Sequence record: OP380601.1
Direction: 5' to 3' (one strand)
DNA length: 64,000 bases
Numbering within the stretch: the stretch's first letter is position 1; each line of letters begins with the position of its first letter. The notes beneath the pieces are model-generated. The model ran no database searches. It had not been told where the DNA came from and was given only the letters and a program-made list of their open reading frames with translations. Below, piece by piece: positions 6,790 to 58,159 of the stretch. Position numbers and translations under genes: made by a program.

Positions 6790-6926
6790 AATATATTTTG
6801 CTTGGGTGTTTACTTGGCGGTTTAGCTATAGTATGCTCTGATGTGTTTCATACACAAGACTTACAAGATTCGGTCGATGGGCTGAATCTTGTTTACAAAA
6901 AACTAGCAGAGGTTGTATATGAGTAA
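6786..6926 (+). CDS. small protein with N-terminal hydrophobic segment, 46 aa
   Basis: Hand-translated, fills gap with overlaps at both ends. Confidence 0.5.
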   Translation: MKYILLGCLLGGLAIVCSDVFHTQDLQDSVDGLNLVYKKLAEVVYE

Positions 6927-7671
6927 AGTAAAAACATACCATTGGAAGGACTACAATTCCAAAGTTGAATGGATAGGTAAGATAAACAAAATTTTCGGTG
7001 ATGATGGTGCAGAATATGAATTAGCAAACAAGCTAATTTTTGAGAAAGATCTGGTTTGTGTTTTCAATGAAAAATGGCCTAATGACGTAGATATTGTCAA
7101 CGGAAAGTCTGTCTTCGGTCTTCTAATATTCGTTGAGGATGACATTAATAATTTTTTGGTTGAAGTTGGTACTGAACAAAAAACCGAGAACGTGGAAACT
7201 TGGTATAAGTGGAAAAATTCAGACAGTCCCGTATTGTGGAAAGAACGTGTCTTCTACGCATTTCAACGTAATTGGAATAATGACGCCCTAAGCGAACTAG
7301 AAAACGTCATCGACCAAATCCATAAAAAAGTAAGTTTTATTGCCGGTGGGGCATTTACAAATGATAAATCTATTTTCACTGCGGATGGACTTGGTTTCAA
7401 AAATCAAATTCTGTTCCTACCACATGAGGTAGAAGAATATTTGGTCGAGGTTGGTAGCCAAGTTGACCAACAACAAGTAAAACAAGTTGACACTATGCCA
7501 GAATCTGGTATCTTTACTGCTGTATGGATCGAAGATGGATTTTTAAAATCAGAAGATTTCTTTTCTGATGGAGTTTATGTAAAGCTCCAACGTGTGGATG
7601 TGGTAAGGATCCGTAGGGAAGAACTCCTGAAAAGTCTTCCATCAAATACAATTTATATGGTTATTGAATAA
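6919..7671 (+). CDS. GoF/ComC-alpha-like repeat protein
   Basis: Two similar units (YHWKDYNSK..FLVEVG; YKWKNSDSP..YLVEVG). Confidence 0.5.
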   Translation: MSKVKTYHWKDYNSKVEWIGKINKIFGDDGAEYELANKLIFEKDLVCVFNEKWPNDVDIVNGKSVFGLLIFVEDDINNFLVEVGTEQKTENVETWYKWKNSDSPVLWKERVFYAFQRNWNNDALSELENVIDQIHKKVSFIAGGAFTNDKSIFTADGLGFKNQILFLPHEVEEYLVEVGSQVDQQQVKQVDTMPESGIFTAVWIEDGFLKSEDFFSDGVYVKLQRVDVVRIRREELLKSLPSNTIYMVIE

Positions 7672-7686
7672 CTCGGAGAATGAAAA

Positions 7687-7956
7687 ATGAAATTTCGATT
7701 TAAATCAGAAGAATCTTTTAATCAATTTATGAACACCCTTGAGCAAGAAAAGGCAGTGTTTTCTAATTATCCAGAAAGCACTAATAATACTCAGACGGTT
7801 ATCGACTTGTTTAGTGATATTCGTATGAACGTATTTGAAGCAGAATTGTTGGGGTCTGATATGATTGGGGTAAATGATGAATTTCCTTTCGATGACAACG
7901 ACAGCTTAGTAATGTTTTCAGATGAAATCGAAGAATATCTCGATATCGTCGATTAA
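7687..7956 (+). CDS. GoF/ComC-alpha-like domain protein
   Basis: MKFRFKSEESFNQF...DEIEEYLDIVD. Confidence 0.55.
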   Translation: MKFRFKSEESFNQFMNTLEQEKAVFSNYPESTNNTQTVIDLFSDIRMNVFEAELLGSDMIGVNDEFPFDDNDSLVMFSDEIEEYLDIVD

Positions 7957-7975
7957 ACCACTCTGTATGGACGTA

Positions 7976-8032
7976 TAAGAGACTTTGTAACCTACTCTAT
8001 AACTTTGTATAGGTTAAGTGTAAAGTCTCTTA
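7976..8032. repeat. nested inverted repeat
   Basis: TAAGAGACTTT/AAAGTCTCTTA (11 bp) enclosing TAACCTA/TAGGTTA (7 bp). Confidence 0.8.
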
Positions 8033-8048
8033 AAACGCTTTGTATGAG

Positions 8049-8114
8049 TTAGTTTCAAATGCAATCAAAGTATAAAGTTCTATAATATATTAATAGAAAC
8101 TTTATAATTAGAAA
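8049..8114 (+). repeat. 66-bp AT-rich palindromic element, copy 1
   Basis: 63/66 identical to 47133-47198. Confidence 0.9.
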
Positions 8115-8169
8115 ATTCGAGCTTGCGAGACGGCGAAGCCGTTACTCACTACGTTCGTAAAGAGGTTCT

Positions 8170-8553
8170 ATGTTAGAATGGTTTAAGAAAAAAGATATAC
8201 TGAGATTTTATATTGATTTGTCATATATTGATGGGTTGGGTTGTAAGGTTTTTGTCCATAGTGCGATTTTGTCAATAGAAATTGATAAGAGTTGCGACCT
8301 TAATAAGGTTAAGGAACTTATCGATATCAAGGCTAAGTGGTTTGCTCAGAACAATATCGTTTTCCAGAAAACTCTAAATGATAAATTGGTTATTCCACGT
8401 AGGGGCTTCGCTCAATTCTCTAGCGATAAGGTAGATCTCGTAAATTCTAATCGTAAATTTTGGAGTTATGAAGCGTATGATTTCTTCAGTGCTAAAACCA
8501 CATGGGGTATAGACTTACAAAATAAAATAAATGAGGCAATTAGAAATGGCTAA
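8170..8553 (+). CDS. hypothetical protein
   Basis: GAGG SD, 127 aa. Confidence 0.75.
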   Translation: MLEWFKKKDILRFYIDLSYIDGLGCKVFVHSAILSIEIDKSCDLNKVKELIDIKAKWFAQNNIVFQKTLNDKLVIPRRGFAQFSSDKVDLVNSNRKFWSYEAYDFFSAKTTWGIDLQNKINEAIRNG

Positions 8554-9010
8554 AGAAATTGAACGTAAGTGGGTTGTAGATAAATTTCCAAATGTTGAAT
8601 TTGAGAATGAGAAAACCGTATATATCACTCAATGGTATATTGATGGAGTCCGATATCGTAAGGTGCTTTTTAGGGATTATAGTTATCAATATATCCGCAC
8701 TGTAAAAACAGGTTTCGGTCTATCTCGGGATGAAGATGAATTCGAAATGGAAGAGAAAGAGTTTCATGAGATCGTTTATGCTAGTGGGTCTACTGGCTTG
8801 CGTAAGATCCGATACAAAATGCCTTGGATGGGCTACACTATAGAATTTGATGAAATGTTGGATTATCCGACCATGTATGCAGAGATCGAGTTTCCTACAG
8901 AGAAAGAAGCTTTGGATTTTTGTGACTATCCCGAGTGGTTTGGTAAAGAAGTAACGTATGATACCAATCACTCCATGTATGCATATTTTATGAGGTTGAA
9001 TGATGAGTAG
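8546..9010 (+). CDS. CYTH / triphosphate tunnel metalloenzyme
   Basis: KEIERKW (ExExK), KIRY, IEFD, AEIEF, PEWFGKEVT. Confidence 0.85.
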   Translation: MAKEIERKWVVDKFPNVEFENEKTVYITQWYIDGVRYRKVLFRDYSYQYIRTVKTGFGLSRDEDEFEMEEKEFHEIVYASGSTGLRKIRYKMPWMGYTIEFDEMLDYPTMYAEIEFPTEKEALDFCDYPEWFGKEVTYDTNHSMYAYFMRLNDE

Positions 9011-9320
9011 TATGGAATTTGTTAAAGGGGAAATCATTTCCCTTGGGGTATCTTTAGAAACATTCATGAAAATTGAAGATTATGATGATGCACTAGAAGA
9101 ATTTTTGGATAAGTATTATAAATCAAAAGAATATATTTTGGTTGATGGTATCGTCCATAAGGTTATAGAGTACCAAGAACTAGACCCATGTGGTTATGTT
9201 GATATTGAAAAAACAAAGGACGGTACTATCAAATTTATATCACTATGGTATAATGGCGGTGGCGATCTTGATGAGTGTTTGAGTGAGGCTATTAAAGATG
9301 AAGCGCGTAAAAATAATTGA
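9000..9320 (+). CDS. hypothetical protein
   Basis: Coupled ORF. Confidence 0.75.
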   Translation: MMSSMEFVKGEIISLGVSLETFMKIEDYDDALEEFLDKYYKSKEYILVDGIVHKVIEYQELDPCGYVDIEKTKDGTIKFISLWYNGGGDLDECLSEAIKDEARKNN

Positions 9321-9564
9321 TGGACGAGAGTTCGTTGAATCTGGGTTCCCAGATGCTGATGTTGTTGAGATGAATGCATCTATCGTAAAATGGTTTTATG
9401 AAAACAAAGAAAATGAAATCTTTGTAGTTAAAGACCCAAACCAAACAAACCCACAAGGATATATGTTCTATATTGAGCTATATCAAGACGGTGTAAAAAT
9501 GTATAAATTTAGTCCCATTGCGGTTTATGACTGGGAACTAGAAAAGTTTTTTATGGTTTTGTGA
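9298..9564 (+). CDS. GoF-like domain protein (divergent)
   Basis: MKRVKIID..F....N; C-terminal DWELEKFFMVL. Confidence 0.45.
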   Translation: MKRVKIIDGREFVESGFPDADVVEMNASIVKWFYENKENEIFVVKDPNQTNPQGYMFYIELYQDGVKMYKFSPIAVYDWELEKFFMVL

Positions 9565-9601
9565 TTGACACATACATGTGGGTATGAGATACTACCCACA
9601 T
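9565..9601 (+). promoter_or_regulatory. early promoter with stem around -10
   Basis: TTGACA-17-GATACT; ATGTGGGTA-TGAGATAC-TACCCACAT. Confidence 0.85.
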
Positions 9602-9620
9602 CAATTAACAGGGAAATATT

Positions 9621-9800
9621 ATGAAAGCGATTATTGATGTTAACAACGTACAGCTCCAAATTTCGAAACTGTCTGTAAAATATCACCCAAGTATCGTCGA
9701 TGTGATTATGGATATCGACCCCGAGATTTGTCCGGCTTTGGTTATTGAACATCACGAATATAAAACTATCATGAAATATATTGAGATGGGTAAACAATGA
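9621..9800 (+). CDS. hypothetical protein, 59 aa
   Basis: First ORF after promoter, AGGGA SD; below track cutoff. Confidence 0.7.
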   Translation: MKAIIDVNNVQLQISKLSVKYHPSIVDVIMDIDPEICPALVIEHHEYKTIMKYIEMGKQ

Positions 9801-10033
9801 AAAATATTCTTGATTTTCCAGTAGGAACACCCAGTAGTGAAATACCAACACATATGTTGTTTGCTCACGAACGGCGCATTATGGAAACCATCAATATTGT
9901 TTTTGGTGACCAACAAACATTCGTTGAATACGTTAAGGATAAAGATCCAGAAGTCTGGGCAGAAGAAATCCGAAATAAGTATGAAGAAGTAACAGGTTTT
10001 AAGTTCCCCCGTAATATTAAGTTTGGAGAATAA
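9797..10033 (+). CDS. hypothetical protein
   Basis: ATGA-coupled. Confidence 0.7.
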   Translation: MKNILDFPVGTPSSEIPTHMLFAHERRIMETINIVFGDQQTFVEYVKDKDPEVWAEEIRNKYEEVTGFKFPRNIKFGE

Positions 10034-10034
10034 A

Positions 10035-10535
10035 ATGAAAAACTATCCATATTTCCGGTCTTCTGTTTTGGATGTATTTTGTAAAAAGACTCGGTTATAT
10101 CCGCCTTCCGAAATCTTCTTTGGTCTTGTCAATCCAACCAGCCAACAGAAAAAGGCCGAGGTTCGGATCGCTGGTATCTGTGAAGAACTTTATGCTCTAG
10201 AAGTCGGTACATTGCGAGATCTCCGAACTGCCATGAATGATGTTCTGGTAATGGAGCAATTTCACGAAAATATCAAGTCGGTTGTCTTTATTGAGAAGTG
10301 CGCAATCCTTCAAGCCCATGTGAAGTATGCTATGGAGTGTCTAAATGCCATGATGAAGAAAGAACCGTTGTTGAAAGAATATTTCGATTGGGGCTTGACC
10401 AAGGAAGAAATCAATAGTACAATTTTCAATATTGTAGTCGCCAAGATTGATGATCTAGAGCCAAAGGATATTGCTACTATTCAAAATCCTATCATGACTT
10501 CAGAATACAACCGAATCAAAGGACTAAAGAAATGA
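10035..10535 (+). CDS. hypothetical protein
   Basis: GGAG SD. Confidence 0.8.
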   Translation: MKNYPYFRSSVLDVFCKKTRLYPPSEIFFGLVNPTSQQKKAEVRIAGICEELYALEVGTLRDLRTAMNDVLVMEQFHENIKSVVFIEKCAILQAHVKYAMECLNAMMKKEPLLKEYFDWGLTKEEINSTIFNIVVAKIDDLEPKDIATIQNPIMTSEYNRIKGLKK

Positions 10536-10732
10536 CCGGTAAATGTAATGTTCATTATCAAGATTACGATTCTAGCTATGAATTTTCAGATGATCACGCA
10601 CTGCCAGAAATCCAATCTATACAAATTACTTATGATGGTGGTCGATTTGGGGTTTACATTAACGGAGAAGTGTTTTATTATAATAGCTCAAGTGGTAATG
10701 ACTTTTCCTTTTCAATTAACAAGGTAGATTAA
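10532..10732 (+). CDS. hypothetical protein
   Basis: Coupled. Confidence 0.65.
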   Translation: MTGKCNVHYQDYDSSYEFSDDHALPEIQSIQITYDGGRFGVYINGEVFYYNSSSGNDFSFSINKVD

Positions 10733-10734
10733 TT

Positions 10735-11187
10735 ATGAAATTATCATTTTCCCAACTTAATGAAATGTGTGGTGGTAATGTTGCTGTAGTAGATGCATAC
10801 ACTTTTGGTAAAAACTTTGTTATCTGGAATGTATGTGGTTATGATAATGTGTATCATCAAGTAAAAGTTCCTCTTCAAAAGATCTCTCGTTCGTATGCTC
10901 TTGAACTTCTTGAGTATGACCCAGATCAACGAGTTCGGGATTATGAACTTGAACATGAATTACATCAATATGATATTGGGATCTTCATCGACGGAGATCA
11001 ATATTCTGCTTGTAATAGTAAACATAGTTTCCATTCTAACGATTATGAACGGTGGCCTATTAACTGGGATACACCAGTAAACAAGTTTAAACTCGGTCGT
11101 ATTGCAGAGCTGGAAGATAATATCCAGTTGCTGCGTCAAGAGATTGTAAAAATCAAAGATAGTATGAATGGAGATAATAAACAATGA
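10735..11187 (+). CDS. hypothetical protein, C-terminal coiled coil
   Basis: 150-aa ORF. Confidence 0.75.
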   Translation: MKLSFSQLNEMCGGNVAVVDAYTFGKNFVIWNVCGYDNVYHQVKVPLQKISRSYALELLEYDPDQRVRDYELEHELHQYDIGIFIDGDQYSACNSKHSFHSNDYERWPINWDTPVNKFKLGRIAELEDNIQLLRQEIVKIKDSMNGDNKQ

Positions 11188-11384: not shown

Positions 11385-11416
11385 CATATGATTGTGGGTA
11401 TGAGATATTACCCACA
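11381..11416 (+). promoter_or_regulatory. early promoter with stem around -10
   Basis: TTGACA-17-GATATT; TGTGGGTA-TGAGATAT-TACCCACA. Confidence 0.85.
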
Positions 11417-11440
11417 TAGACAACACATGAGGAATATATT

Positions 11441-12201: not shown

Positions 12202-12212
12202 GGAATTCTCTC

Positions 12213-12845: not shown

Positions 12846-12850
12846 CTAAA

Positions 12851-13303
12851 ATGAGTCATACTAAGATTAAACCCCATGTATTGGAAAAGGCGGTTAATAA
12901 CTATTTCCAGATTAATGAAGTTGCAAAGAAAATGGTTGATAAACGTCTAGCCGAAGTAATGGCAGAAACTAAAGTTGTCGGTTGGTTTTTTAAACGCACG
13001 GTCAATAAAGTTGCATATGACGAGGATCATAATCCATTCTCACAACCGCATATAATCAAATTTGAATTGATGCAAAAATTGCGTGAAGCTCTTTCTCTTA
13101 AGAGTAGTAAGATCCTCAATAAAGTATATGAGTATAAGTCGATGTGCGATGTATGCCCGTCAGGAGATTTTCACGATCAAGAAATTGGCTTTATATATGC
13201 AGATGAGGAAATGTGTTGGTTCATCGATCATATGAATAAAACTAATTCAATTGTGGTTGAAAAGGCTGCGGCTAAACTTTGGTGGAGTGAGTCTAATGAT
13301 TAA
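12851..13303 (+). CDS. hypothetical protein
   Basis: 150-aa ORF. Confidence 0.75.
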   Translation: MSHTKIKPHVLEKAVNNYFQINEVAKKMVDKRLAEVMAETKVVGWFFKRTVNKVAYDEDHNPFSQPHIIKFELMQKLREALSLKSSKILNKVYEYKSMCDVCPSGDFHDQEIGFIYADEEMCWFIDHMNKTNSIVVEKAAAKLWWSESND

Positions 13304-13688
13304 GAAGCTTAAATTTAAAAACCCCGCTGCGGCTCGCGCATGGGTAAACGAAATCCGAAGTAACTATTTCGGGTTCAATTTTAAAACCGCAACCGACCGA
13401 TATAAATTTGACGAGCTAACCCAAAAGGTATATGATTTTCCAGATCGGGTTATGGAGGTTGAAGTAGATGATCGGGGAATTGGAATTTCTATCGATGGTT
13501 GGTCTGTTGGTGAATCTTCTGGTGAATTCCTTTTGTATGAATACGATATCCTTGATGGTATGGACGAGGTAATCACGACCCCACCAGCAGATCCTTTTTA
13601 TGTAGAGCTTGCGGAATTGGCTAACAAATATAATATGGAACCACAAACCGCATGGCACAATATGTTCCGTAAGAGGGTTTCACAATGA
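13296..13688 (+). CDS. GoF-like domain protein
   Basis: KKLKFKNPAAARAWVNE. Confidence 0.5.
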   Translation: MIKKLKFKNPAAARAWVNEIRSNYFGFNFKTATDRYKFDELTQKVYDFPDRVMEVEVDDRGIGISIDGWSVGESSGEFLLYEYDILDGMDEVITTPPADPFYVELAELANKYNMEPQTAWHNMFRKRVSQ

Positions 13689-18075: not shown

Positions 18076-18294
18076 ATGACTGCTCAAATCTTCTTCTCTA
18101 CCCGTGCTAATGCTCGTCAGGCTTCTTTCGGTAAGATGACTGATAATGGCTCTACTGCTCCTAAGCGTTGGGCTCGGAGTGTTGAGGTAACTTCCACTGG
18201 CAACAAAACCCTGTCGGTCGGTAAAGGTTCCCGCAACAACGGTTACAAGGCCGTTACCATCATCACCAAGAAAACCAAAACTCTGGTTCACTAA
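18076..18294 (+). CDS. small basic protein, paralogue of 42515
   Basis: FFSTRANARQASFGKMTDNG..KRWAR..ITKKTKTLVH. Confidence 0.85.
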   Translation: MTAQIFFSTRANARQASFGKMTDNGSTAPKRWARSVEVTSTGNKTLSVGKGSRNNGYKAVTIITKKTKTLVH

Positions 18295-18630: not shown

Positions 18631-18969
18631 ATGTTGAATACGCGTTATACTGTTATAAAAGATTTTCCCGAGTTTCATAAAAGGTATCAAGAACTGGTTG
18701 TTGGTTCTTCTTTCAAAGTTATCCGAGTTTCTGCGGGTTATATCTGTGATGGGATTATGGGAATCAAAATGGACTCAGGGACTGTTTACGATATTGCGTT
18801 GGATCCAGACTACTGGTGTTTCTATACTGAGAATATGGTAGTGAATTACCTTGAAGCTCAACCTATGGACGATTGGCAATTGTGGAAGTTTGAAGAGGAC
18901 CTAATACTCAAACAACTGGAACTCCATCGTAGCAAAGAACCGAAAAATGGACATGAACATGTTGAATAA
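18631..18969 (+). CDS. hypothetical protein, tandem paralogue of 18959 N-domain
   Basis: Shared RYxVI..VVGxxFxV..WCFYTENM. Confidence 0.8.
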   Translation: MLNTRYTVIKDFPEFHKRYQELVVGSSFKVIRVSAGYICDGIMGIKMDSGTVYDIALDPDYWCFYTENMVVNYLEAQPMDDWQLWKFEEDLILKQLELHRSKEPKNGHEHVE

Positions 18970-19426
18970 GCGTTATAAAATAATCGCCGATTGTGCTCCT
19001 GCCTTGGTAAAATCTTTCCCTCTTATGGTGGTTGGGAATACTTTCACAGTTACCAAAGTACAACACCTTCCAGATGGATATGATCTAATTTGTGGTATGA
19101 CCCAAATCACCATGGGTTGTGGAACTGTTTATAACATCGATATTCAATCCAAGTTCTGGTGTTTCTATACAGAGAATATGATCGCTTGTCGTCTGTTAGA
19201 AATTAATAACTCGATTATCAAAGTAAAATTTAAAAGTCCAGAACATAGGGAAGAATACATTAGTGATTATCTTCCAAACCAATGGGTATCGGATCTAATG
19301 GGTGATGAGTTCCATGAAGCTATTCAATATCCTAGTGGATTGATTGCACTTAAGAATCTCTTTATTACTGGTAATCGAATTGTGTTCTTTAAGCGTGAAC
19401 ATCAATATCTTGAAATCGTGGAGTAG
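18959..19426 (+). CDS. WCFYTEN domain fused to GoF-like domain
   Basis: C-terminal KVKFKSPEHREEY..N...EHQYLEIVE. Confidence 0.65.
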   Translation: MLNKRYKIIADCAPALVKSFPLMVVGNTFTVTKVQHLPDGYDLICGMTQITMGCGTVYNIDIQSKFWCFYTENMIACRLLEINNSIIKVKFKSPEHREEYISDYLPNQWVSDLMGDEFHEAIQYPSGLIALKNLFITGNRIVFFKREHQYLEIVE

Positions 19427-22443: not shown

Positions 22444-22692
22444 ATGAAGATTAAATTCAAATCAGAAGATGCTAGGATCGCTTTTGCTTCTTTGTCCGTA
22501 GCCAATGCAACGATTGCAGACTATATGAAAGATGGTGTTCATGAAGCCATTAATCACTCCAATGGATGGATTGAACTAGTTGATGAGAATGGACATGGTA
22601 TGGAGTTTAGTTCACCTTCGTGGGACCATTGGTTTTATTCCGGAGTATTCCATATGGATGAGCGCCAATACATTGACATTGATGGAGAATAA
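22444..22692 (+). CDS. GoF-like domain protein
   Basis: MKIKFKSEDARIAF....N..IADYM...DERQYIDI. Confidence 0.6.
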   Translation: MKIKFKSEDARIAFASLSVANATIADYMKDGVHEAINHSNGWIELVDENGHGMEFSSPSWDHWFYSGVFHMDERQYIDIDGE

Positions 22693-22695: not shown

Positions 22696-22899
22696 ATGAC
22701 CGTAAGGACCATTTATTTCGCTTTCGTTGATAAAGGTTATGCGAATCCAAAGACCAATCTTATTGACCCAATCTTATCTTTGGAAAATGTTGACATTTCT
22801 TCTACTACTGGAATGGACATTTATCGCGACCAATCCGGAGCTGTTTACGTCTATCATGACCGTTTCCATGGTGATTTCGACTTTATGCCAAATTGTTGA
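22696..22899 (+). CDS. hypothetical protein
   Basis: GGAG SD. Confidence 0.7.
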   Translation: MTVRTIYFAFVDKGYANPKTNLIDPILSLENVDISSTTGMDIYRDQSGAVYVYHDRFHGDFDFMPNC

Positions 22900-23150: not shown

Positions 23151-23432
23151 ATGAAATCTGTTTTGCAATATATAAAAGAGAATCCGGATGCCTTTATGGG
23201 TGCTGCTGAATCACGTAGCCATACTAGTCCTAGCCATACTAATATGATGAATCATAAACGGTTGATGGTTTATATCCATAGTGAGAATTGGGTTGAAGTT
23301 GAACAACTGATTACTGATGCGTTTTACTATAAACCGCTTGAGGGGGTTGTGCTGCTTGCCGAGCGTTATGGTCTGGATAGTGATGATTGGTTAGGTGCTT
23401 ATGATGCTTATGAAGCTGGGAATATTGTATGA
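23151..23432 (+). CDS. hypothetical protein
   Basis: AGGA SD. Confidence 0.75.
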   Translation: MKSVLQYIKENPDAFMGAAESRSHTSPSHTNMMNHKRLMVYIHSENWVEVEQLITDAFYYKPLEGVVLLAERYGLDSDDWLGAYDAYEAGNIV

Positions 23433-23740
23433 AGCTCTGGATTATTTCTCTTGTTAGTGTAGTATTGTTATCTGGGTGTTTTCCAAAAGTTGTTAGTGAA
23501 AATACTTATAGTGATGATGTGGTTGTTACTTCCTTTGTGAAGAGACATAAACATCAACGGATTGTTGTTCGTACTTCTGATGGTGTTGTTATTGACCAGT
23601 ATGTAGCTAAACGATGTAGTGATTGTGTTGCTGATGTTGGTGATAAGTTTAATGTGGATGTGACTAGAACTGTTTGGGATGATGGTGATGTTACTTATGA
23701 TCTCAACCGTAGTCAGACTAAAGATTTCTTGAGGAAATAG
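23429..23740 (+). CDS. lipoprotein, paralogue of 25970
   Basis: LLSG-C lipobox. Confidence 0.75.
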   Translation: MKLWIISLVSVVLLSGCFPKVVSENTYSDDVVVTSFVKRHKHQRIVVRTSDGVVIDQYVAKRCSDCVADVGDKFNVDVTRTVWDDGDVTYDLNRSQTKDFLRK

Positions 23741-25969: not shown

Positions 25970-26290
25970 ATGAAAAATCTGCTGGTTGTTGTGTTCGCTC
26001 TGTTCGCTCTGGTTGGTTGTAACGAAGTTGTTAACACTGAATCTTTTGTTGAAACTGCTACCGTGACCAAGTTCGTCAAAACGTTTAAAGATGACCAGCG
26101 TATTAGTATCAAAACCGAATCTGGTATCGAGTTGAATAACCGTGTTGTTGGTAAACATAACTGGTATTACAATGCTAAGAAAGGCCAGATTGGTACTTTC
26201 ACCATCACCAAGAAAACTTATGAAGATGGTAAAGTGACTTATGTTTTCTCTGCTAAAGAAATGCGTGAGTTCCTTCGTTCCAATAAATAA
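25970..26290 (+). CDS. lipoprotein, paralogue of 23429
   Basis: LVG-C lipobox; shared VTxFVK..QRI...G...TY..FLR. Confidence 0.75.
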   Translation: MKNLLVVVFALFALVGCNEVVNTESFVETATVTKFVKTFKDDQRISIKTESGIELNNRVVGKHNWYYNAKKGQIGTFTITKKTYEDGKVTYVFSAKEMREFLRSNK

Positions 26291-26841: not shown

Positions 26842-27270
26842 ATGAAAGATATCAAATCTATCTACAATGTGTTTATCGAAAGTGGAAGTTCGGCAATTAG
26901 TACCAATCTTCTGAATCAAATTCGAGAGTTGAAACACTACGAATTTGAACGTGGCAATCCGGATATTTTCAAAGATGAATCTGGTACACTTTCCATTGAT
27001 ATTGATGGAAATCTCACGTTCGAAAATAGTTTCAAAATTCACCCTCGGAAGTGGGCTACACATCTCAATGTACCAGAGCCATATGATATTGTGGTTCTTT
27101 TGGATGGAGTTCTTTATGAGAGTCCAGATACCTATTCCGAACGGGACTTTGTAGTTGCTTCAGTTAAATGTCTTGAAACTGAATTGACTATCGATTATAT
27201 TAGAGACGAGTGGAACGAATCAGGTTACAATTATTTGGCATTTAATCAAGCTGTCCAAGATTGGGAATAA
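26842..27270 (+). CDS. hypothetical protein
   Basis: AGGGA SD. Confidence 0.75.
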   Translation: MKDIKSIYNVFIESGSSAISTNLLNQIRELKHYEFERGNPDIFKDESGTLSIDIDGNLTFENSFKIHPRKWATHLNVPEPYDIVVLLDGVLYESPDTYSERDFVVASVKCLETELTIDYIRDEWNESGYNYLAFNQAVQDWE

Positions 27271-28700: not shown

Positions 28701-28738
28701 TTGACAGAGTATCCCCGTTTGTGGGATACTCTCTTTGT
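28701..28738 (+). terminator. terminator-like hairpin fused to early promoter
   Basis: TTGACA-18-GATACT; AGAGTATCCC/GGGATACTCT + CTTTGT. Confidence 0.8.
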
Positions 28739-30015: not shown

Positions 30016-30218
30016 TGAAGATAGAATGTGGAGATAATGAGGAATTTGTCGATTACTTTTTATCTCTCAATGCATGGAAATATACTCCGGCAGGAAATGC
30101 CAGAGTATTGAAAGTAAATAATATAGATTCTCTGAAATATATAACCAAGTGTCAGGTTGTTAAAGCTACCTTATGGGACCGGATTCAGTATGTAAAGGAA
30201 CATGGAAATGAAAACTAA
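30003..30218 (+). CDS. hypothetical protein
   Basis: Coupled ORF. Confidence 0.6.
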   Translation: MERLMKIECGDNEEFVDYFLSLNAWKYTPAGNARVLKVNNIDSLKYITKCQVVKATLWDRIQYVKEHGNEN

Positions 30219-30615
30219 AATAGTTCTAGGTAAAGATTTAGAAGTTGGTATGAGAATTTGTGCATGGGGTGATTTGTACGCTACAATTTCACATATAAGA
30301 GATTATGTGGGTGTTAATCAAGAGCATTATGATAAAACCATTACACTGGATCCCATTCACAAAAATGATGACGCTGCGCTTGCTGGGTATGATAGAAATA
30401 TAGCCCCAACTGACTGGTATTGGGTTGTTGATGATAGACCAATAACCGCAAATAGTATTCTATGTGATTTCCTTGTTGGTAAAACTACTTGGGATGGTTG
30501 TTTTGTAACCGATGTGACTATGGAAAATGGGGCTGATGGTCCGTGTATTAGGATACATACATCAATCGGATACGAAGATTATTATCAATCAGAACAAATA
30601 AATTTGGAAAACTAG
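30208..30615 (+). CDS. hypothetical protein, paralogue of 32575
   Basis: MKTKIVLGKDLEVGMRI. Confidence 0.75.
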   Translation: MKTKIVLGKDLEVGMRICAWGDLYATISHIRDYVGVNQEHYDKTITLDPIHKNDDAALAGYDRNIAPTDWYWVVDDRPITANSILCDFLVGKTTWDGCFVTDVTMENGADGPCIRIHTSIGYEDYYQSEQINLEN

Positions 30616-32574: not shown

Positions 32575-32955
32575 ATGAAAACTCAGATTGTTTTGGCTAA
32601 AGATCTCGAATGCGGTATGAAAATTATCCCTTGGGCAGATATCGAGTTTACCGTTTCATCTGTAAGTAAAGGACCGGATGGAGTTAAAGTTTCTGTTCGA
32701 GATTCTGATAATAAAGAATCTAATTTTTTGTGTTATGAGCATTCTGAGTTTAGTCAAGTAGTGCCCGAATATAAAACATCACATTTCGAACGAATTTTAA
32801 GGGAATCTTTGGTAGGAAAAGAGTTGTTCTATGGTGGCGCAAATCGAGGTAAGATTACCGATGTTATGATTTGTAAGACCCTTATTCAGGTAGAAACCAA
32901 TTATGGGACGGTTCATGATTATCACAATACTGAAGAAATTACAGTTGTATTCTAA
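32575..32955 (+). CDS. hypothetical protein, paralogue of 30208
   Basis: MKTQIVLAKDLECGMKI. Confidence 0.75.
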   Translation: MKTQIVLAKDLECGMKIIPWADIEFTVSSVSKGPDGVKVSVRDSDNKESNFLCYEHSEFSQVVPEYKTSHFERILRESLVGKELFYGGANRGKITDVMICKTLIQVETNYGTVHDYHNTEEITVVF

Positions 32956-38837: not shown

Positions 38838-39047
38838 ATGAAAATCAAATTTATTAACGAACAGGCCATCCAAGACTTTCTAAATTTTGGTTCGGAAACG
38901 GGGGAAATTGTACACAATAGCCTTATTGTTGAAATGTATAAACTTTCCCCGTTTGAGGTGGTCAAGCGTAATTGTTGTGGCTATAGTAACAAGTCTATTT
39001 ATATTGCAGATGAAGAGATGCAATTTTTTGAAATAATTGAGGAATGA
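38838..39047 (+). CDS. GoF-like domain protein
   Basis: MKIKFINEQAIQDF..HN..PFEV..DEEMQFFEII. Confidence 0.65.
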   Translation: MKIKFINEQAIQDFLNFGSETGEIVHNSLIVEMYKLSPFEVVKRNCCGYSNKSIYIADEEMQFFEIIEE

Positions 39048-39048
39048 A

Positions 39049-39279
39049 ATGAAAATTCAGTTTAAATCTGAGGAAGCAATGGAAGAGTTTCGAATGGCTT
39101 TGGGTGTTGACCAAAGTTCCAGAGATCACAATTCCAAATTCGTTCAAAAATACGGAATGTCTGTAATCGAAATCACACACACTGATGAATATTGGTGGGA
39201 TATTATTGATTCAAATGGCGGTCTTGAATATACAGTCGATATCGACTGTGAAGGACACCTTTTCAATATTATCAAATAA
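39049..39279 (+). CDS. GoF-like domain protein
   Basis: MKIQFKSEEAMEEF..HN..EGHLFNII. Confidence 0.65.
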   Translation: MKIQFKSEEAMEEFRMALGVDQSSRDHNSKFVQKYGMSVIEITHTDEYWWDIIDSNGGLEYTVDIDCEGHLFNIIK

Positions 39280-41300: not shown

Positions 41301-41336
41301 TTGACTGAGTATCCCATTCGTGGGATACTCTTTTTG
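41301..41336 (+). terminator. UUCG terminator fused to early promoter
   Basis: TTGACT-17-GATACT; GAGTATCCCA-TTCG-TGGGATACTC+TTTTTG. Confidence 0.85.
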
Positions 41337-42232: not shown

Positions 42233-42442
42233 ATGAAAATCCGTTTCAAATCTGAATGCGCTATGAAGAACTTTATGGCAAATGGTATGGACTCCGGCGA
42301 TTATAACCACAACAAAGCAATGGTAGAAACCTATCAATCTCTCCCATTCCATGTAGATGTGAAAGGCCATGGTTGGGAAAATGAAGAGTTTTATATTTCC
42401 CCTGACGAATACGATTTCTTTGAAATTATTAGTGAAAGTTAG
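42233..42442 (+). CDS. GoF-like domain protein
   Basis: MKIRFKSECAMKNF..HN..PFHV..DEYDFFEII. Confidence 0.65.
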   Translation: MKIRFKSECAMKNFMANGMDSGDYNHNKAMVETYQSLPFHVDVKGHGWENEEFYISPDEYDFFEIISES

Positions 42443-42514: not shown

Positions 42515-42736
42515 ATGACTAACGTACAAGTTTTCTTCTCTACCCGCGCCGCCGCTCGTCAAGCTTCTTTCGGTAAGATGACTGATAATGGTACTACTTC
42601 CGAAAAGCGTTGGGCTCGTACTGTAACGGCCACAAGTAACGGTAACAAAACACTGTCTATCGCTTCAGGTGTTCGTAAGAATGGTTACAAGGACGTTACC
42701 GTAATCACCAAGAAAACCAAAACTCTGGTTCATTGA
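42515..42736 (+). CDS. small basic protein, paralogue of 18076
   Basis: FFSTRAAARQASFGKMTDNG..KRWAR..ITKKTKTLVH. Confidence 0.85.
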   Translation: MTNVQVFFSTRAAARQASFGKMTDNGTTSEKRWARTVTATSNGNKTLSIASGVRKNGYKDVTVITKKTKTLVH

Positions 42737-52034: not shown

Positions 52035-52037
52035 CTA

Positions 52038-55000
52038 TTAACTAACACGCTGCCACAAAGAAGTATTCCAACGAGCATATGTTCCTTCAAGAACATAACC
52101 CATCAATCGCCAGTTACCCGGAGGTACGGATGATGATACGTTATTACCTTCAGCAGAACACCAACGCAAGTTGCTACCAGCAGTAACAAATCCCGGACCT
52201 CTTTCTCCGATATTAACAGCGGTAGTCATCATTGCGAATTGCCCTATTGCGGAATAACTAGCCCCTGCAAGTTGGTTACCCGCAGCTTGGGCAGCAGGTG
52301 GAGGGTTGTTGGCTGAATACACCCGAGCACCACCATCATATACACCAGTACCGAAAATGGTTGAGGCGCAAGTTATTGGCTGATAAAAATAGAATCCACT
52401 TCCAGCATTCGTAGTAAAGTGAGAATATCCAGAGTTCTTTGGACCCATTTCAAGATACGTGCTACCGAGATTTATCCTAAATTGACCCGCAGTAGATGGA
52501 ACAATAGTAACGTTACCACTAACAGTACCACCAGACAGAGCCAATGCCCCAACAGCAGCAGCCGTAGGTGGGCGCAACGAATCGTAAGTCAATGCCCATG
52601 CAGACCAATCGGTATAATATGTTCGAATGTATCTAACCCCCGTAGCATAAACCGTATATTCTTGGATTATTCCAGCAGCTTTCGTAATAACCAATGCCCC
52701 CGCTTGTGCTGTTGGGTAATTGTTGGCTGTGCTGGCATTTGAATTTAAGTCCTGATAGTAATATCCTGGGGTTTGGATATTATTCAAGTTTGCAGCAGTA
52801 CCAAGATGGATAGCGTTAGCCGGTGTCTGGGTTGACAGCGAACTCTCAAGATAATCTTTCCGCACCAGTGAACCCGCAGTTGTTCCTTGGTTAACCAGAG
52901 AAATTGGGTCTTTACTTAGTGATATACTATCTGCACCCACTCTTATATAAGCTGTATGACCATAGCTATAAAGGAATGTATCAGCAGACCCAGCACCACC
53001 TTGACCAACATACCAACGACTTGCACCTGTTGAGTCAACCCCAATAAGATATTGTGCTGACGTTACTCCTAATGTTGTACTTTTCAGTGCAAGAGGTAGG
53101 CTGGTTGATGACTGAACTATTAGCTGACCAGTCATAGTATCGCCAGATTTTGATACCTGTTGTGCTATTAGACCATCAACGTAATCTTTGCGGGTTAAAG
53201 AATTTGCTTCAGTACCCTGAGCAGCAGATAGCAATACTTTTGGAGCAGTCAAGTTACCAGTCATGGTATCGCCGGTCTTTGTAACCTGTTTAGCACACTC
53301 AGAAATTACAAAGTCTCTTCTAGCCGCCGAGTTAACTTCAGTACCTTGAACCGCAGATAGCAATACTTTTGGAGTGGTTAGATTACCAGTCATGGTATCG
53401 CCAGTTTTACTAACTTGCTTTGCCAACTCAGCATTTATTTCAGATGTGGTCAAAGTACCAATATCGGCAGGAGATGGTTTATTAGCAGTTGTGTATATAT
53501 CAGCAGTACCATGTTTCAGATTACCAGCACCACGAATAATTGTGTTGTTGTTATCTACACCCACGGTAAGATTGCCATCGTTTATGTTTCTGGAAATCAT
53601 AAACATGTTTACAAACGATCCACCGATTATATTATATAGTCCAGAAGTAACCCCATTATCAGCCAAATATAATCTACGTTCAGACCTTCTAACACCAACT
53701 TGTGGTTCAGCAGTAGTTCCAGCGTCTACAATTAGGTTACCGGTCATAGTATCACCGGCTATATTAACGACACCTAATTCTGTTGAAGTTGGTTTATATC
53801 CTTCGTGATATATCTTTTGGTTAGAATATTCAAGACTTCCGTTATCTTTAAGTTGCAATAACTTAGAAGATATACCATTTCGGAAAAATACATCAGTAGT
53901 CCCAGTAGATATAGTTAACTTATCTATCCCATCTCTAACGCTATGAAAGTTATTGGCAATACGAAGTGCCCCCGTCATGGTATCGCCAGTTTTAGATACC
54001 TTAGTACCTACTTCCGCATCTACATAATCTTTACGGGTTGAACTGTTTACCAAACTACTTTGTGTGGTATTCTGCAAAAAGTCATCGGCGGTAACTCTAC
54101 CAGTATTTATTTGTACCTTTCTAGCCGCATGGGTAAACTCAGCTCCCATTTCTCTATTAATAGCTAAAATTGAACTATCGGATACAGTACCATCAGCCCT
54201 ACGAAGTCTAGACGAGAAATATAGTGATCCATCATATTCACCCGCAGTTGCGGTATTGGTTACCATTCCTAAAATTCTAGATAGTTGATCCCCTGAGTGT
54301 GGGTCGTATCTATTTGCAGAACCTGCACGGAAAGATATTTCACCTACGGTATAATACGTCCCCGGGGCAACTGTATCCCTATACTTCTCTTTGGTATAAG
54401 ATACATAAGGATATACAGAATCGTCAGCTCCTACAGTATTTCTACGAAGGATACCAGTTCTATATGTGTTTACTGTTTCCCATTGACCAGAAGGAACCCA
54501 ATCAGACCACCCATCAGTTGCATTTATCCAAGTACGAGTGAATTCTCTTTGGTTTGTTGCACTTTGAGCGGTAGCCCAATACATAAACTTCTGAATAGTT
54601 AGGTTATCAAAAGCCCGTTGATATACTTGTAATATACCTGTATGTCCGGTTGATGTAGCTGTGTTATCAACTCCATTTGCCCAAGAACCTTCAACCGTGA
54701 AATTCCCGTTAGTCTTAGCCAAGTTGAAATCACGAACGTTTCCAGTGATTGTAAGAGCGTTTGGAGCGTCACCAACACCAAGACCCATACCACCAACCGG
54801 TTGCTTGTTAGAAGTTGAATACAACTCAAACCAAGGCTGCCAAACATTGATATGTTGACGACGAACAAACACCCTATCAGACCCATAGGTAAAGAACATC
54901 TGAGTATTGGCACCATTACCCCAACGAGTTACAAGTAATGTAGAACCACTAGGTCCAGTACCATGTGGAGTGTTTACTGTATTAGCAAATATGCCATAGT

Positions 55001-55784
55001 TACCCGGCATGGTTGCGTTATTACAATCATCATCAGTTGGGCGATCATAAATAGCCATTGCACTAATGTCTTGTGGAGTAGGCATATTCCCACGATGGAG
55101 AATATCATAGTTTACCCCACCCTGAAGAACTTGAGGTTGTATGCCAGATGCCATACTAATTCTGAATTGAGACAAAGGTGTACCAAACCATCCAGACAAC
55201 ATCATCTTTTGATCTGCAATATCTCTATCTTTTTTACCGGATTGAAAATATCCAATAGCTCCAGAAACTACGATTCTTTGTGCGTATGTGTCGTCCATAT
55301 TTTCAAGACCGGAATTTGAGGTTGCTGTAATTTTCCCTTGTGAAGAGAAATTACCAGTAGTAGCTAAATTTCCATTTACCGTATCCCCATCTCTATTAAC
55401 TACGTTAAATGGATGGTTGTCCAATTTAGTTTTATCTACCGCACTCATCGAACCCGCAGCAGTTGGAGTTGCCGGATCTATAGATACAGTCGGATTTATT
55501 CCGGTAGTTACTCTAATAGGTGTAGTTCCACTAACTGATTTAACTGATGTGGAATCTTTACCATCTACGTATGATTTGTTTGTGGCATCATTAGCCAATA
55601 CAGGAGTAGGAACTGTAGCACCTGTAGTAAAATCTTTTTTTCCGGCGATAGTCTGATTATTTTTGCTATCTACCAGCTCCATATCCTTGTAGAATATTTT
55701 CCCATCTTGAGGGGAAACCGGTAGGTTTGTTTGTGTCCAAACCAGACTTCCCCCAGCAGTAGATGAACTCTTCAATTCTGCCAT
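52038..55784 (-). CDS. 36: long tail fibre, gp36-like N-terminus, pyocin-knob-like domains
   Basis: MAELKSSSTAGGSLVWTQTNLP resembles T4 gp36; repeated KTGDTMTG fibre motifs; three knob-like domains. Confidence 0.8.
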   Translation of the reverse strand: MAELKSSSTAGGSLVWTQTNLPVSPQDGKIFYKDMELVDSKNNQTIAGKKDFTTGATVPTPVLANDATNKSYVDGKDSTSVKSVSGTTPIRVTTGINPTVSIDPATPTAAGSMSAVDKTKLDNHPFNVVNRDGDTVNGNLATTGNFSSQGKITATSNSGLENMDDTYAQRIVVSGAIGYFQSGKKDRDIADQKMMLSGWFGTPLSQFRISMASGIQPQVLQGGVNYDILHRGNMPTPQDISAMAIYDRPTDDDCNNATMPGNYGIFANTVNTPHGTGPSGSTLLVTRWGNGANTQMFFTYGSDRVFVRRQHINVWQPWFELYSTSNKQPVGGMGLGVGDAPNALTITGNVRDFNLAKTNGNFTVEGSWANGVDNTATSTGHTGILQVYQRAFDNLTIQKFMYWATAQSATNQREFTRTWINATDGWSDWVPSGQWETVNTYRTGILRRNTVGADDSVYPYVSYTKEKYRDTVAPGTYYTVGEISFRAGSANRYDPHSGDQLSRILGMVTNTATAGEYDGSLYFSSRLRRADGTVSDSSILAINREMGAEFTHAARKVQINTGRVTADDFLQNTTQSSLVNSSTRKDYVDAEVGTKVSKTGDTMTGALRIANNFHSVRDGIDKLTISTGTTDVFFRNGISSKLLQLKDNGSLEYSNQKIYHEGYKPTSTELGVVNIAGDTMTGNLIVDAGTTAEPQVGVRRSERRLYLADNGVTSGLYNIIGGSFVNMFMISRNINDGNLTVGVDNNNTIIRGAGNLKHGTADIYTTANKPSPADIGTLTTSEINAELAKQVSKTGDTMTGNLTTPKVLLSAVQGTEVNSAARRDFVISECAKQVTKTGDTMTGNLTAPKVLLSAAQGTEANSLTRKDYVDGLIAQQVSKSGDTMTGQLIVQSSTSLPLALKSTTLGVTSAQYLIGVDSTGASRWYVGQGGAGSADTFLYSYGHTAYIRVGADSISLSKDPISLVNQGTTAGSLVRKDYLESSLSTQTPANAIHLGTAANLNNIQTPGYYYQDLNSNASTANNYPTAQAGALVITKAAGIIQEYTVYATGVRYIRTYYTDWSAWALTYDSLRPPTAAAVGALALSGGTVSGNVTIVPSTAGQFRINLGSTYLEMGPKNSGYSHFTTNAGSGFYFYQPITCASTIFGTGVYDGGARVYSANNPPPAAQAAGNQLAGASYSAIGQFAMMTTAVNIGERGPGFVTAGSNLRWCSAEGNNVSSSVPPGNWRLMGYVLEGTYARWNTSLWQRVS
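53131..53420 (-). repeat. 129-bp (43-aa) tandem repeat in fibre gene
   Basis: GTCAT.GTATCGCC units at 53131, 53260, 53389. Confidence 0.85.
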
Positions 55785-55821
55785 CTTCGTTTCCTCGAAA
55801 AATTGTTTTGTATTACCTTAT

Positions 55822-55829
55822 TATTTAGG
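55822..55829 (-). promoter_or_regulatory. late promoter CCTAAATA
   Basis: Upstream of fibre gene. Confidence 0.8.
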
Positions 55830-55833
55830 TATT

Positions 55834-55861
55834 AAAAAAGGCTCCATTAAGGAGCCTTTTT
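55834..55861 (-). terminator. terminator after spanins
   Basis: A6-GGCTCC-ATTAA-GGAGCC-T5. Confidence 0.85.
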
Positions 55862-56143
55862 ACATTGTGGTTCATTTAATTCTTTTCTATAAGTACATAA
55901 CATTCGATTTTGAGAGTCTATATAAACTCCAATTTTCTCCAACCAAGCCCTATATCTTAAACTGTCTTCATATGTCATACCAACAAACGTTGTATCACCT
56001 TCTTTTATTACAGTCCACTTAGGAACATACGTTTTAACTGCTACTGGTCTATTTGGATGGAATGTTAATTTAGTTTCCGGTATCGGTTTTGAAGAACATG
56101 CAACTAATACAGAAAACATTAAGCCGATTATAATTAATCTCAT
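55847..56143 (-). CDS. pseT.2: o-spanin lipoprotein (Rz1/pseT.2-like)
   Basis: LVA-C lipobox, HP..P motif, overlaps i-spanin stop. Confidence 0.8.
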   Translation of the reverse strand: MRLIIIGLMFSVLVACSSKPIPETKLTFHPNRPVAVKTYVPKWTVIKEGDTTFVGMTYEDSLRYRAWLEKIGVYIDSQNRMLCTYRKELNEPQCKKAP

Positions 56144-56517
56144 TTACATTCCCCCATGGTAATACAATCCATTCTTACCCCAAATTCAACATAATCTTTC
56201 TGGATTAACTTCTCTACAAGCTTAGGTTTCTTATCTATAGCAACCTGACCACGCCCAGCATTCACTTCTAGTGTGTTAATTCGCTTGGAAAGCTCTCTGT
56301 TAGATTCCTGTTCAATCTTGCTATATTCACCGGACTGTAATTTGAAATCGCTTATACTCGTTTCTAGAGCGTTTAAACGGGACTTGGTAGTTTCCAATGT
56401 CTGAGTTAGTTCACCAATAACAATCCCTTGAGATTCTATCTTGTTTGTCATATACCAAGCAGACCCACCAATCGCAATTATTATCGCCAGAACTGCAAAT
56501 ATTTTGAGTTTCATCAT
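56140..56517 (-). CDS. pseT.3: i-spanin (Rz/pseT.3-like)
   Basis: N-terminal TM, coiled coil, KPKLVEKLI, C-terminal Cys. Confidence 0.8.
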   Translation of the reverse strand: MMKLKIFAVLAIIIAIGGSAWYMTNKIESQGIVIGELTQTLETTKSRLNALETSISDFKLQSGEYSKIEQESNRELSKRINTLEVNAGRGQVAIDKKPKLVEKLIQKDYVEFGVRMDCITMGECK

Positions 56518-56535
56518 TTATATTCTCCCATAACG

Positions 56536-56567
56536 AAAAAAGCCTCACCCATATTTAGGGGAGGCTT
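56536..56567 (-). terminator. terminator whose loop carries the late promoter CCTAAATA (56552-56559)
   Basis: Minus strand AAGCCTC-CCC-TAAATAT-GGG-T-GAGGCTT+TTTT. Confidence 0.8.
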
Positions 56568-56573
56568 AGGAGA

Positions 56574-57065
56574 TTATTTTTTATTCCATTCAACGCAAAT
56601 CAATTCAGTAAAATCACCATCGTCAATTGTATTTTCAATTATACGTGAGATAACTTCCCAATCTCCACCGGCTACACCAGCACCAATTTTAGGGAAAACT
56701 AATCGATATCCTTCATATCCATAATCTTCAGCTATATTTCTAAATGCGTCTTCAAGTGCATCGAGACGAAGATCCGCTCCCGGAAAGTATTGGGTGTATA
56801 GGTTGCATAGTTTACTTACACTTGCACCATCAGAAAGGTTTATATAACTATAATTCCCCAACATATCCATATTATCTTTGAAATACTTGTAATACCATTC
56901 ATCAGCCTGTACAGCTTCTGGAAAATGAATAGAGATTCCACCGGCAATACCGGATTTCATAGCGAGATGACAATTACATCCGTGTACAAAGATAGTAGGG
57001 ATTTTAAGCTGTTCTGGGTCTTTCATCATATCGATCATATCACCAGAAATATATTTAATTTTCAC
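56574..57065 (-). CDS. tk.4: macrodomain (ADP-ribose processing) protein
   Basis: VHGCNC...MKSGIA, NLYTQ, FPKIGAGVAGGDW; GTG start after AAGGA. Confidence 0.85.
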   Translation of the reverse strand: MKIKYISGDMIDMMKDPEQLKIPTIFVHGCNCHLAMKSGIAGGISIHFPEAVQADEWYYKYFKDNMDMLGNYSYINLSDGASVSKLCNLYTQYFPGADLRLDALEDAFRNIAEDYGYEGYRLVFPKIGAGVAGGDWEVISRIIENTIDDGDFTELICVEWNKK

Positions 57066-57327
57066 AATAAATTTCCTTATAAAATTCACCAATAACCCAA
57101 TCGGGAGAATAATTTAAGGTTGTTAGATTGACAGGATGAATATACGTAATTGATCCGGATACAAAATAAAACTTAACAATATTACTATCCAATTCGGCTT
57201 TAGATTCATCAAGGGTCACGAAGTCATATGCCCAATCATTAAAACCTAGATATTTGGCATTATTCAGGATCAATTCACCGGATGTACCAAATGATCTAGC
57301 AAGGTATTTAATGTCTTTGACGGTCAT
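57055..57327 (-). CDS. hypothetical protein
   Basis: Coupled ORF. Confidence 0.7.
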   Translation of the reverse strand: MTVKDIKYLARSFGTSGELILNNAKYLGFNDWAYDFVTLDESKAELDSNIVKFYFVSGSITYIHPVNLTTLNYSPDWVIGEFYKEIYCEN

Positions 57328-57599
57328 TCGTGGATCCTATAAAAATGAACACTTTCGACATTGTTAATATAAACAGTTCCATCATTTCGATAATATGGTC
57401 TTTCACCAAGAACATCATCAATGGAACAGATCGCAATAACGTTATCATCTTCGTCAGTATGAAATACACGAAAACCATCTTTCATCAGCTCATAATTGAA
57501 ACGGTTGCTTTCGCAACTATTTCTATATGCATGACGAGATTCTAATGAGCGGAATTGATACCGCCCTTCTACTACCATTCGATTTTCAGTTGAAAACAT
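57324..57599 (-). CDS. GoF/ComC-alpha-like protein
   Basis: RYQFRSLESRHAY..N..LM..GFRV..D..NVESVHF parallels recalled T4 GoF. Confidence 0.6.
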   Translation of the reverse strand: MFSTENRMVVEGRYQFRSLESRHAYRNSCESNRFNYELMKDGFRVFHTDEDDNVIAICSIDDVLGERPYYRNDGTVYINNVESVHFYRIHE

Positions 57600-58159
57600 T
57601 GTTTACCTTCCGAGTCTTTGGAAATAGTCATTTCGTATTTGGAAACACCTTCCATTACATTTGATACCAAATCAAGAATCTCAACATTATCGATTCTGAT
57701 ATGTTCAACTGGTTTAGGAAGCCCAGTCAGTTTCAATTCCCCAGACATACTCATACCTGAAAGATCCTTTGCAAAATCATCTTCTGGCTCTTTTTTCTGG
57801 GGAAGTTCTGGAACGTAAAGATCCTTCATGATAGCAGAATACAATACATCTTCATCGATTTGGGTATCCTCTTCCCGATCATCCATGTCGTAATCACGGA
57901 TCCATTCGAAATATTTACCAAAGTCTGACGTATTAATATGATTGATTTCGTCAATCTTCTCTACACCATTTACAATAAATCGACTAATGTATCCATCTTT
58001 ATCTGCGAATTTAAGAGAATCATTTGAAACATGCAATTCAATTGAACCATCTACATCGTGATTCATATACACATTCAAAATAAAATCTCGATTTTCCGCT
58101 GATTTAATAAATTTATCAATCAAATCGGAATTCCTAAAAACAAAAACAGCTACTTTCAT
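57572..58159 (-). CDS. GoF-like N-domain, acidic linker, C-terminal domain
   Basis: FVFRNSDLIDKFIK..N; SDFGKYFEWI; acidic linker as in T4 GoF. Confidence 0.5.
   Translation of the reverse strand: MKVAVFVFRNSDLIDKFIKSAENRDFILNVYMNHDVDGSIELHVSNDSLKFADKDGYISRFIVNGVEKIDEINHINTSDFGKYFEWIRDYDMDDREEDTQIDEDVLYSAIMKDLYVPELPQKKEPEDDFAKDLSGMSMSGELKLTGLPKPVEHIRIDNVEILDLVSNVMEGVSKYEMTISKDSEGKQCFQLKIEW

Follow-up and report, generated by a model that had tools for sequence, protein, structure and literature searches.

A 64-kb stretch of Aeromonas phage avDM6 encodes at least six, and probably nine, proteins with a domain related to the predicted N-terminal barrel of T4 GoF

GoF-like genes of the window

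The stretch of DNA analysed here (64,000 nucleotides, hereafter the window) agrees in every base with positions 1-64000 of Aeromonas phage avDM6 (OP380601.1; Straboviridae, Emmerichvirinae, Ishigurovirus), a phage with a genome of 233,966 bp in whose first 50 kb every annotated coding sequence (138 of 138) is recorded as "hypothetical protein". Small + strand open reading frames (ORFs) fill bases 1-51,400 of the window, and from about 51.5 kb there follow - strand genes for lysozyme, long tail fibre, spanins, a pseT-like phosphatase, thymidine kinase and a Hoc-like protein. At least six of the window's genes, and probably nine, encode the N-terminal barrel domain of T4 GoF, and in most of these GoF-like genes the predicted barrel makes up the whole protein (69-96 residues). 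A first-pass annotation of the window had listed eleven ORFs, named here by their lowest coordinate, as one expanded family. All eleven are present at the positions it gave, with plausible ribosome-binding sites, and the T4 GoF motif that it gave is correct. The family itself proved smaller, with six of the listed ORFs firm and two (57324 and the N-terminal part of 57572) probable; 9298 and 13296 fell away, and the two units of 6919 are alike in predicted fold only. With one gene absent from that list (4915-5205), the membership is about six firm and three probable copies instead of eleven.

The six firm members were established by several scores. A profile search was made among 1.84 billion protein representatives and its matches were then added to the family profile, against which the six score E 1e-31 to 1.5e-7; HHalign places them on the family profile with a probability (P) of at least 98.8%. 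In full-domain Viterbi scoring of our own (glocal scores) they reach 66-105 bits, the highest of the 376 other window ORFs reaching 2.9. Because the glocal score tracks ORF length (r 0.70), a Gumbel fit to the scores of real ORFs was unreliable, and shuffles of each sequence (300 each) were used instead; on that scale unrelated control ORFs at the top of the background lie at z 2.0-2.5. In the 1.84-billion-representative search only 24 proteins were found at E <= 1e-3, including 2 repeat-protein artefacts, and as judged from these matches the GoF-like subfamily is narrow and restricted to phages.

Five of the firm members are small stand-alone ORFs on the + strand that start with MK(I/F)xFK(S/N)E, end with E..(Y/F)(F/L).I, and match PHROG 2980, "goF mRNA metabolism modulator", at E 2e-18 to 8e-4; a Pfam scan found no family covering the firm members or T4 GoF. 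The five are 7687-7956 (89 residues, isoelectric point (pI) 4.05; PHROG 20943 E 2.3e-36, PHROG 2980 E 8e-4, HHalign P 98.8%), 22444-22692 (82 residues; PHROG 3089 E 1.9e-26, PHROG 2980 E 9e-8, P 99.8%), the back-to-back pair 38838-39047 (69 residues; PHROG 2980 E 8e-12) and 39049-39279 (76 residues; PHROG 2980 E 8.5e-16, P 99.5%), the second of which starts 2 bases past the stop of the first, and 42233-42442 (69 residues), whose structure was modelled. The proteins of 38838 and 42233 find each other by BLASTP at E 8e-12. Members are acidic, with a pI of 4.0-5.3 (6.1 for the fusion described next), and the stand-alone copies of 69-89 residues carry a net charge of -6 to -16.

The sixth firm member, at 18959-19426 on the + strand, is a two-domain protein in which a PinA-like N-terminal domain (18959-19219) is followed by a GoF-like C-terminal domain (19220-19426). 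The GoF-like part, residues ~88-155, matches PHROG 3089 at E 2e-13 and PHROG 2980 at E 6e-4, aligns with the family at HHalign P 99.1%, and resembles the 22444 protein at BLASTP E 4e-7. The N-terminal half scores 39.9 bits against PF10465 (cut-off 27), over profile positions 1-83 of 136 only. Directly upstream, on the same strand, lies a second PinA-like gene (18631-18969; PF10465 E 8.5e-11, 42.4 bits, positions 2-117 of 136), and its protein is 46% identical to the N-terminal half of the fusion. The fusion suggests that a module for protein targeting can be joined to the barrel. The C-terminal half of T4 PinA was itself considered as a GoF-like domain and rejected, since by eye it is unlike GoF and whole PinA gives a glocal z of -0.8.

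Three further genes are probably members, to judge from their sequences. The first, 57324-57599 on the - strand (91 residues), is a distant one, closer to the GoF/Frd.2 type (PHROG 622 E 1.5e-3, PHROG 8944 E 2e-3); it scores E 0.0087 with the iterated hidden Markov model (HMM), HHalign P 51% and glocal z 4.7, a value reached by 0 of 300 shuffles. Also distant is the N-terminal part, ~95 residues (57875-58159, - strand), of the 195-residue ORF 57572-58159, with 12.9 glocal bits (rank 10 of 395), z 4.6, 0 of 300 shuffles and no PHROG cross-matches. A small GoF-like gene lies between the pseT-like phosphatase and thymidine kinase genes both in GomatiRiver_11 (locus 2114-3231) and in avDM6 (56574-61047), which suggests that one GoF-like copy is positionally conserved; its avDM6 counterpart would be 57324 or 57572.

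The third probable member, 4915-5205 on the + strand (96 residues), matches the family profile at E 0.0014-0.019 and gives glocal z 6.0 (0 of 300 shuffles) and HHalign P 61% over 28 columns; its N-terminal two thirds are family-like and its C-terminus is different. The corresponding ORF is annotated as 4858-5205, and we note that AAGGAG stands 5 nt before an internal ATG at 4915, that the PHROG 16997 match begins there, and that translation from 4915 begins MKIQF, as in the GoF-like family. The annotated start at 4858 is thus probably wrong, and 4915 the likely true start.

Relation to T4 GoF and predicted fold

The kinship with T4 GoF that the first-pass annotation had proposed is borne out. 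A family profile free of T4 sequences aligns, through its columns 4-75, with GoF residues 12-90 at HHalign P 94.1% and E 1.3e-7, and GoF scored E 3.3e-5 in the iterated HMM prior to its inclusion. GoF matches its own PHROG 622 at 4.6e-38 and PHROG 2980 at 5.5e-6 over residues 11-91. Narrow profiles miss T4, and the link therefore needed a broader one: T4 searches with the narrow A2 profile and with the 18959 protein gave zero matches, and HHalign of two low-diversity alignments reached only P 28%.

In the AlphaFold2 (AF2) model of the 42233 protein, with a predicted local distance difference test score (pLDDT) of 93.8, strand 1 is followed by two helices, strands 2-4, a short helix and strand 5. 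The domain is thus predicted to be a five-stranded antiparallel SH3/LSm-like barrel, its sheet bent in the manner of that class and its strands 1 and 2 separated by a hairpin of two helices. Foldseek found nothing significant for the model in the PDB, and its neighbours in BFVD are small proteins of T4-like phages, a GoF among them. The near-invariant residues fall into three sets: M1, K2, F5, K6, S7, E8 and F14 belong to the opening strand and helix, N27 and G35 stand further along, and E59, Y/F62, F63 and I65 belong to the closing helix and strand. We infer, rather than read from the model, that the hydrophobic ones among them probably form the core. The segment of strands 2-4, by column conservation, varies in both sequence and length.

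The remaining listed ORFs are best considered against this background. The mutual similarity proposed by the first-pass annotation holds at profile level among the six firm members; HHalign gives P only 6% for 57572, and 21%, over 20 columns, for 13296. ORF 13296-13688 (+ strand) has a glocal z of 3.1, which 2 of 300 shuffles reach, its family resemblance is confined to the first ~20 residues, and its PHROG and Pfam scans were both empty. ORF 9298-9564 (+ strand), with z 2.7, is within the range of unrelated controls; no GoF-related PHROG match was found for it, and an ESM Atlas search gave a score of 0.86 and no model. Both ORFs thus score like unrelated ones at the top of the background, and their listing as members is not upheld. 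The listed ORFs had been selected by the same motif that the profile measures, and owing to this circularity the shuffle p-values of 57324, 57572, 13296 and 9298 confirm the motif rather than independently prove homology. A relation of 9298 and 13296 to the family at the level of fold may exist; T4 Frd.2 and MotB.1, the fold relatives named in the literature, score z 2.3, in the range of these two ORFs.

The gene at 6919-7671 (+ strand) encodes a 250-residue protein with two homologous units (6919-7182 and 7183-7464) and an unrelated beta-rich C-terminal domain. The units are true internal repeats (HHalign of one with the other, P 95.9%, E 5.8e-9), and a natural 155-residue relative is without unit 2. 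Against the family profile they give z 0.4 and 0.7, the sequence signal being absent. In the AF2 model of this protein (pLDDT 67, from four sequences only) both units share their order of elements with the 42233 model, and 14 of the top 50 entries of its BFVD list are common to the 42233 list, including the phage 65.2 orthologue of 7687. On a model of moderate confidence, then, the 6919 units would be GoF-like at the fold level only. The C-terminal 68 residues (7465-7671), a separate beta-rich domain with a PHROG 6314 match at E 1e-6, are almost invariant among the four known homologues, the repeat units being much less conserved.

Distribution, maintenance and genomic setting

Related domains occur in numbers in other Aeromonas phages. 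At E <= 1, profile A3 finds 11 places in the avDM6 genome, 14 in CC2, 13 in AS-zj, 14 in phage 65 and 7 in GomatiRiver_11, and in T4 a single place, which is GoF; the avDM6 places outside the window are 87109-87324, 177359-177508, 177629-177826 and 215362-215586. A tree built from 39 domains has the avDM6 copies scattered among those of CC2, AS-zj, phage 65 and GomatiRiver_11, which indicates that most of the duplications are older than the Aeromonas phage genera; 38838 and 42233 are sisters in this tree (support 96/92). Comparison with the phage 65 orthologues gives ratios of nonsynonymous to synonymous substitution (dN/dS) of 0.17 for 7687, 0.20 for 22444 and 0.22 for 18959, and going by these three orthologue pairs the copies are kept by purifying selection.

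The set of copies differs between close relatives. The pair at 38838-39279 is missing from phages 65 and 65.2, though the flanks are ~88% identical, and the sequences closest to it come from CC2-type phages and metagenome contigs; a tblastn search with 39049 found genes of 41-45% identity in CC2-type Aeromonas phages and of 34% in the most distant matches. The orthologue of 42233 in phage 65 (locus 5624-5834) carries a 1-base indel whose frameshift leaves 57 residues with a different tail, and that in phage 65.2 is an intact 69 residues.

Sites of the early-promoter-like form TTGAC-N17-GATACT number 11 on the + strand of the window and 0 on the - strand. At two of them, 28701-28730 and 41301-41329, the spacer is a strong hairpin (-11 and -12 kcal/mol), and these hairpin promoters match the promoter/stem-loop (PeSL) cassettes that have been published for T4-like phages and described as drivers of shuffling (PMC2839356, PMC4122927). 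The "terminator-promoter fusions" that the first-pass annotation saw in this region correspond to these published PeSL elements.

Duplication in the region extends to other small ORFs. Those at 18076-18294 and 42515-42736 encode proteins of 72-73 residues that are 77% identical while lying 24 kb apart, a recent duplication; the former is just upstream of the PinA/GoF cluster and the latter just downstream of the GoF-like 42233. Three weaker pairs of paralogues among the small early ORFs (23429-23740 with 25970-26290, 22696-22899 with 26842-27270, and 30202-30615 with 32575-32955) have 27-57% identity at BLASTP E 9e-5 to 3e-9, and none of them is GoF-like.

Function and comparison with known systems

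What might a phage do with so many copies of one small domain? T4 GoF is an early, non-essential protein present at ~20,000 copies per cell, and the explanation that we put forward, giving it about an even chance of being right as a whole, is that the copies of the N-terminal GoF barrel form a diversified scaffold for binding host partners. The GoF-like proteins would be abundant early "takeover" proteins in which a constant scaffold presents a variable face, so that different copies might bind different host partners; these would more likely be basic RNA-metabolism proteins or other host proteins than naked RNA, and their binding would tune the fate of host or phage RNA or disarm host factors. 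The strong acidity, the variable strands 2-4 and the PinA fusion lead us to favour, with modest confidence, modules that bind host proteins over direct RNA chaperones. A bolder version strikes us as quite improbable: large Aeromonas T4-like phages would maintain a repertoire of ~10-14 binders, constant in their core and hypervariable on the strand 2-4 face, and every binder would have a host target of its own, be it a factor that binds or degrades RNA, a protease (at which the PinA fusion hints) or a defence protein. In that case the family would amount to a modular toolkit against the host, and not to a single "mRNA modulator".

Several observations speak against host-partner binding. A pull-down with T4 GoF recovered GoF alone and no host partner, and the sole functional datum for the family, the stabilisation of gene 41 RNA by GoF(D25Y), points to RNA. 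The "variable face" could reflect mere relaxed constraint. As for early expression, the case for it in the GoF-like genes consists only of their position among small same-strand ORFs and of the promoter-like sites; a generic sigma-70 promoter scan performed at chance (34 found, 33 expected), and a search of sequencing runs detected the phage only as a minor fraction of metagenomes from wastewater, ponds and fish guts, with zero infected-culture RNA runs.

Alternatively, the copies might be LSm/Hfq-like RNA chaperones of the phage, each in direct contact with RNA, perhaps in the form of a ring or dimer, and shielding or remodelling certain transcripts of phage or host. The GoF N-domain has been classed as LSm-like, and with GoF(D25Y) a reporter RNA has a longer half-life, independently of Hfq (PMC12152347); the fold has five antiparallel strands, and the rho-suppressor sites of GoF, D25 and G84, are at variable positions that immediately adjoin the family's two most conserved motifs. 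We nevertheless regard this as unlikely. The net charge of the stand-alone copies is unfavourable for direct contact with RNA, wild-type GoF and MotB.1 have little effect on reporter RNA, and AlphaFold 3 (AF3) gave no confident dimer or hexamer for either protein (PMC12152347). Nor do the copies belong, by motif or profile, to the LSm/Hfq superfamily proper, whose members have an N-terminal helix followed by five strands where the 42233 model begins with a strand and then the helical hairpin; Hfq and Sm chains are absent from the top 50 of the 48,161 chains compared with the model, and no ORF of the window has an LSM or Hfq Pfam match at E <= 1. It is likewise improbable, in our estimate, that the copies have no common function and represent a sturdy fold shuffled among hyperplastic early regions by promoter/stem-loop recombination. 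The hairpin promoters of the region, the absence of 38838 and 39049 from phage 65 and the frameshift in its 42233 orthologue would all suit such a history, in which single copies would be dispensable, drifting or used for unrelated tasks, a prospect to which we assign only a minor chance. The low dN/dS in three orthologue pairs, the conservation of subfamilies across phage genera and the abundance of GoF in T4 speak against it. It is very improbable that there is no protein family at all and that the motif merely reflects chance, composition or a 5' coding signal in common: this fits 9298 and 13296 and, at the level of sequence, to the 6919 units, but it is already refuted for the six firm members, which align over the whole domain with the E-values and HHalign probabilities given above, have orthologues and paralogues in five other phages, and share a confidently predicted fold.

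The GoF barrel copies could help with a protein that has puzzled geneticists from the time of the rho/nusD suppressor work and for which a fold was proposed only in 2025. At least ten diverged, selectively maintained stand-alone copies provide natural variation with which the fold core can be separated from candidate binding surfaces; they also imply that the barrel works without the GoF C-terminal domain, and together with the natural PinA-like fusion they are handles on GoF function. For annotation, nine "hypothetical" avDM6 genes would become GoF-like (six firm, three probable) and one start codon would be corrected. We emphasise that the family and its fold class are already published and that PHROG 2980 and the RefSeq records of CC2 and AS-zj name such genes goF; in the literature searched we found no paper that describes how these genes have multiplied in Aeromonas phages. 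What is added here is modest, namely the fusion to a PinA-like domain and the stand-alone architecture, and is not a new kind of system.

Among known systems, the N-domain of T4 GoF (ComC-alpha; residues ~1-91) is homologous over its whole length to the six firm members, with the hallmark positions F13, K14, F22, N29, G37, E82 and F85-F86 (GoF numbering) in common, and like the window's members GoF is acidic and has a predicted SH3/LSm-like fold; the gene region that holds it is early and non-essential, as that of the avDM6 copies probably is too. Sequence identity between the avDM6 members and GoF is low, and GoF is a 141-residue protein with a C-terminal domain, whereas the avDM6 domain is mostly the whole protein and occurs in 6-9 copies in the 64 kb of the window. 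The published two-domain build of barrel, flexible linker and variable C-domain is thus not that of the firm members, five of which are barrel alone while 18959 has its barrel at the C-terminus; we take this as an architectural difference and do not count it against homology. The first-pass annotation had called GoF single-copy, which at the domain level it is not in T4, where Frd.2 and MotB.1 are other members of the "LSm-like fold" family and of the same fold class (PMC12152347). Frd.2 shares PHROG 622 with GoF and MotB.1 matches it at 1.3e-3, a level similar to that of 57324, yet the profile of the Aeromonas family detects neither of them (HHalign P 1%, glocal z 2.3). Conversely, neither T4 GoF nor any window ORF matches PF03197 (FRD2) at E <= 1, the T4 Frd.2 control scoring 5.2e-39.

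FeoA and the C-terminal domain of DtxR/IdeR, which are SH3-like small barrels, score weakly and have no sequence similarity to the family; metal-binding histidines are absent from it, and the helical hairpin after strand 1 is a feature peculiar to the phage family. As for T4 PinA, the inhibitor of the host Lon protease (PF10465), the N-terminal half of 18959 and the 18631 protein both exceed the PF10465 gathering cut-off, and 18959 carries the GoF-like barrel where the rest of the PinA profile would be. The genes that RefSeq names "goF mRNA metabolism modulator", gp262, gp264, gp266 and gp268 of CC2 (clustered) and gp215 and gp225 of AS-zj, are of the same subfamily, being small, clustered, multi-copy and 41-45% identical to 39049; the avDM6 copies differ from them in being dispersed over ~35 kb rather than gathered in a 2-kb array, and in bearing the annotation "hypothetical protein".

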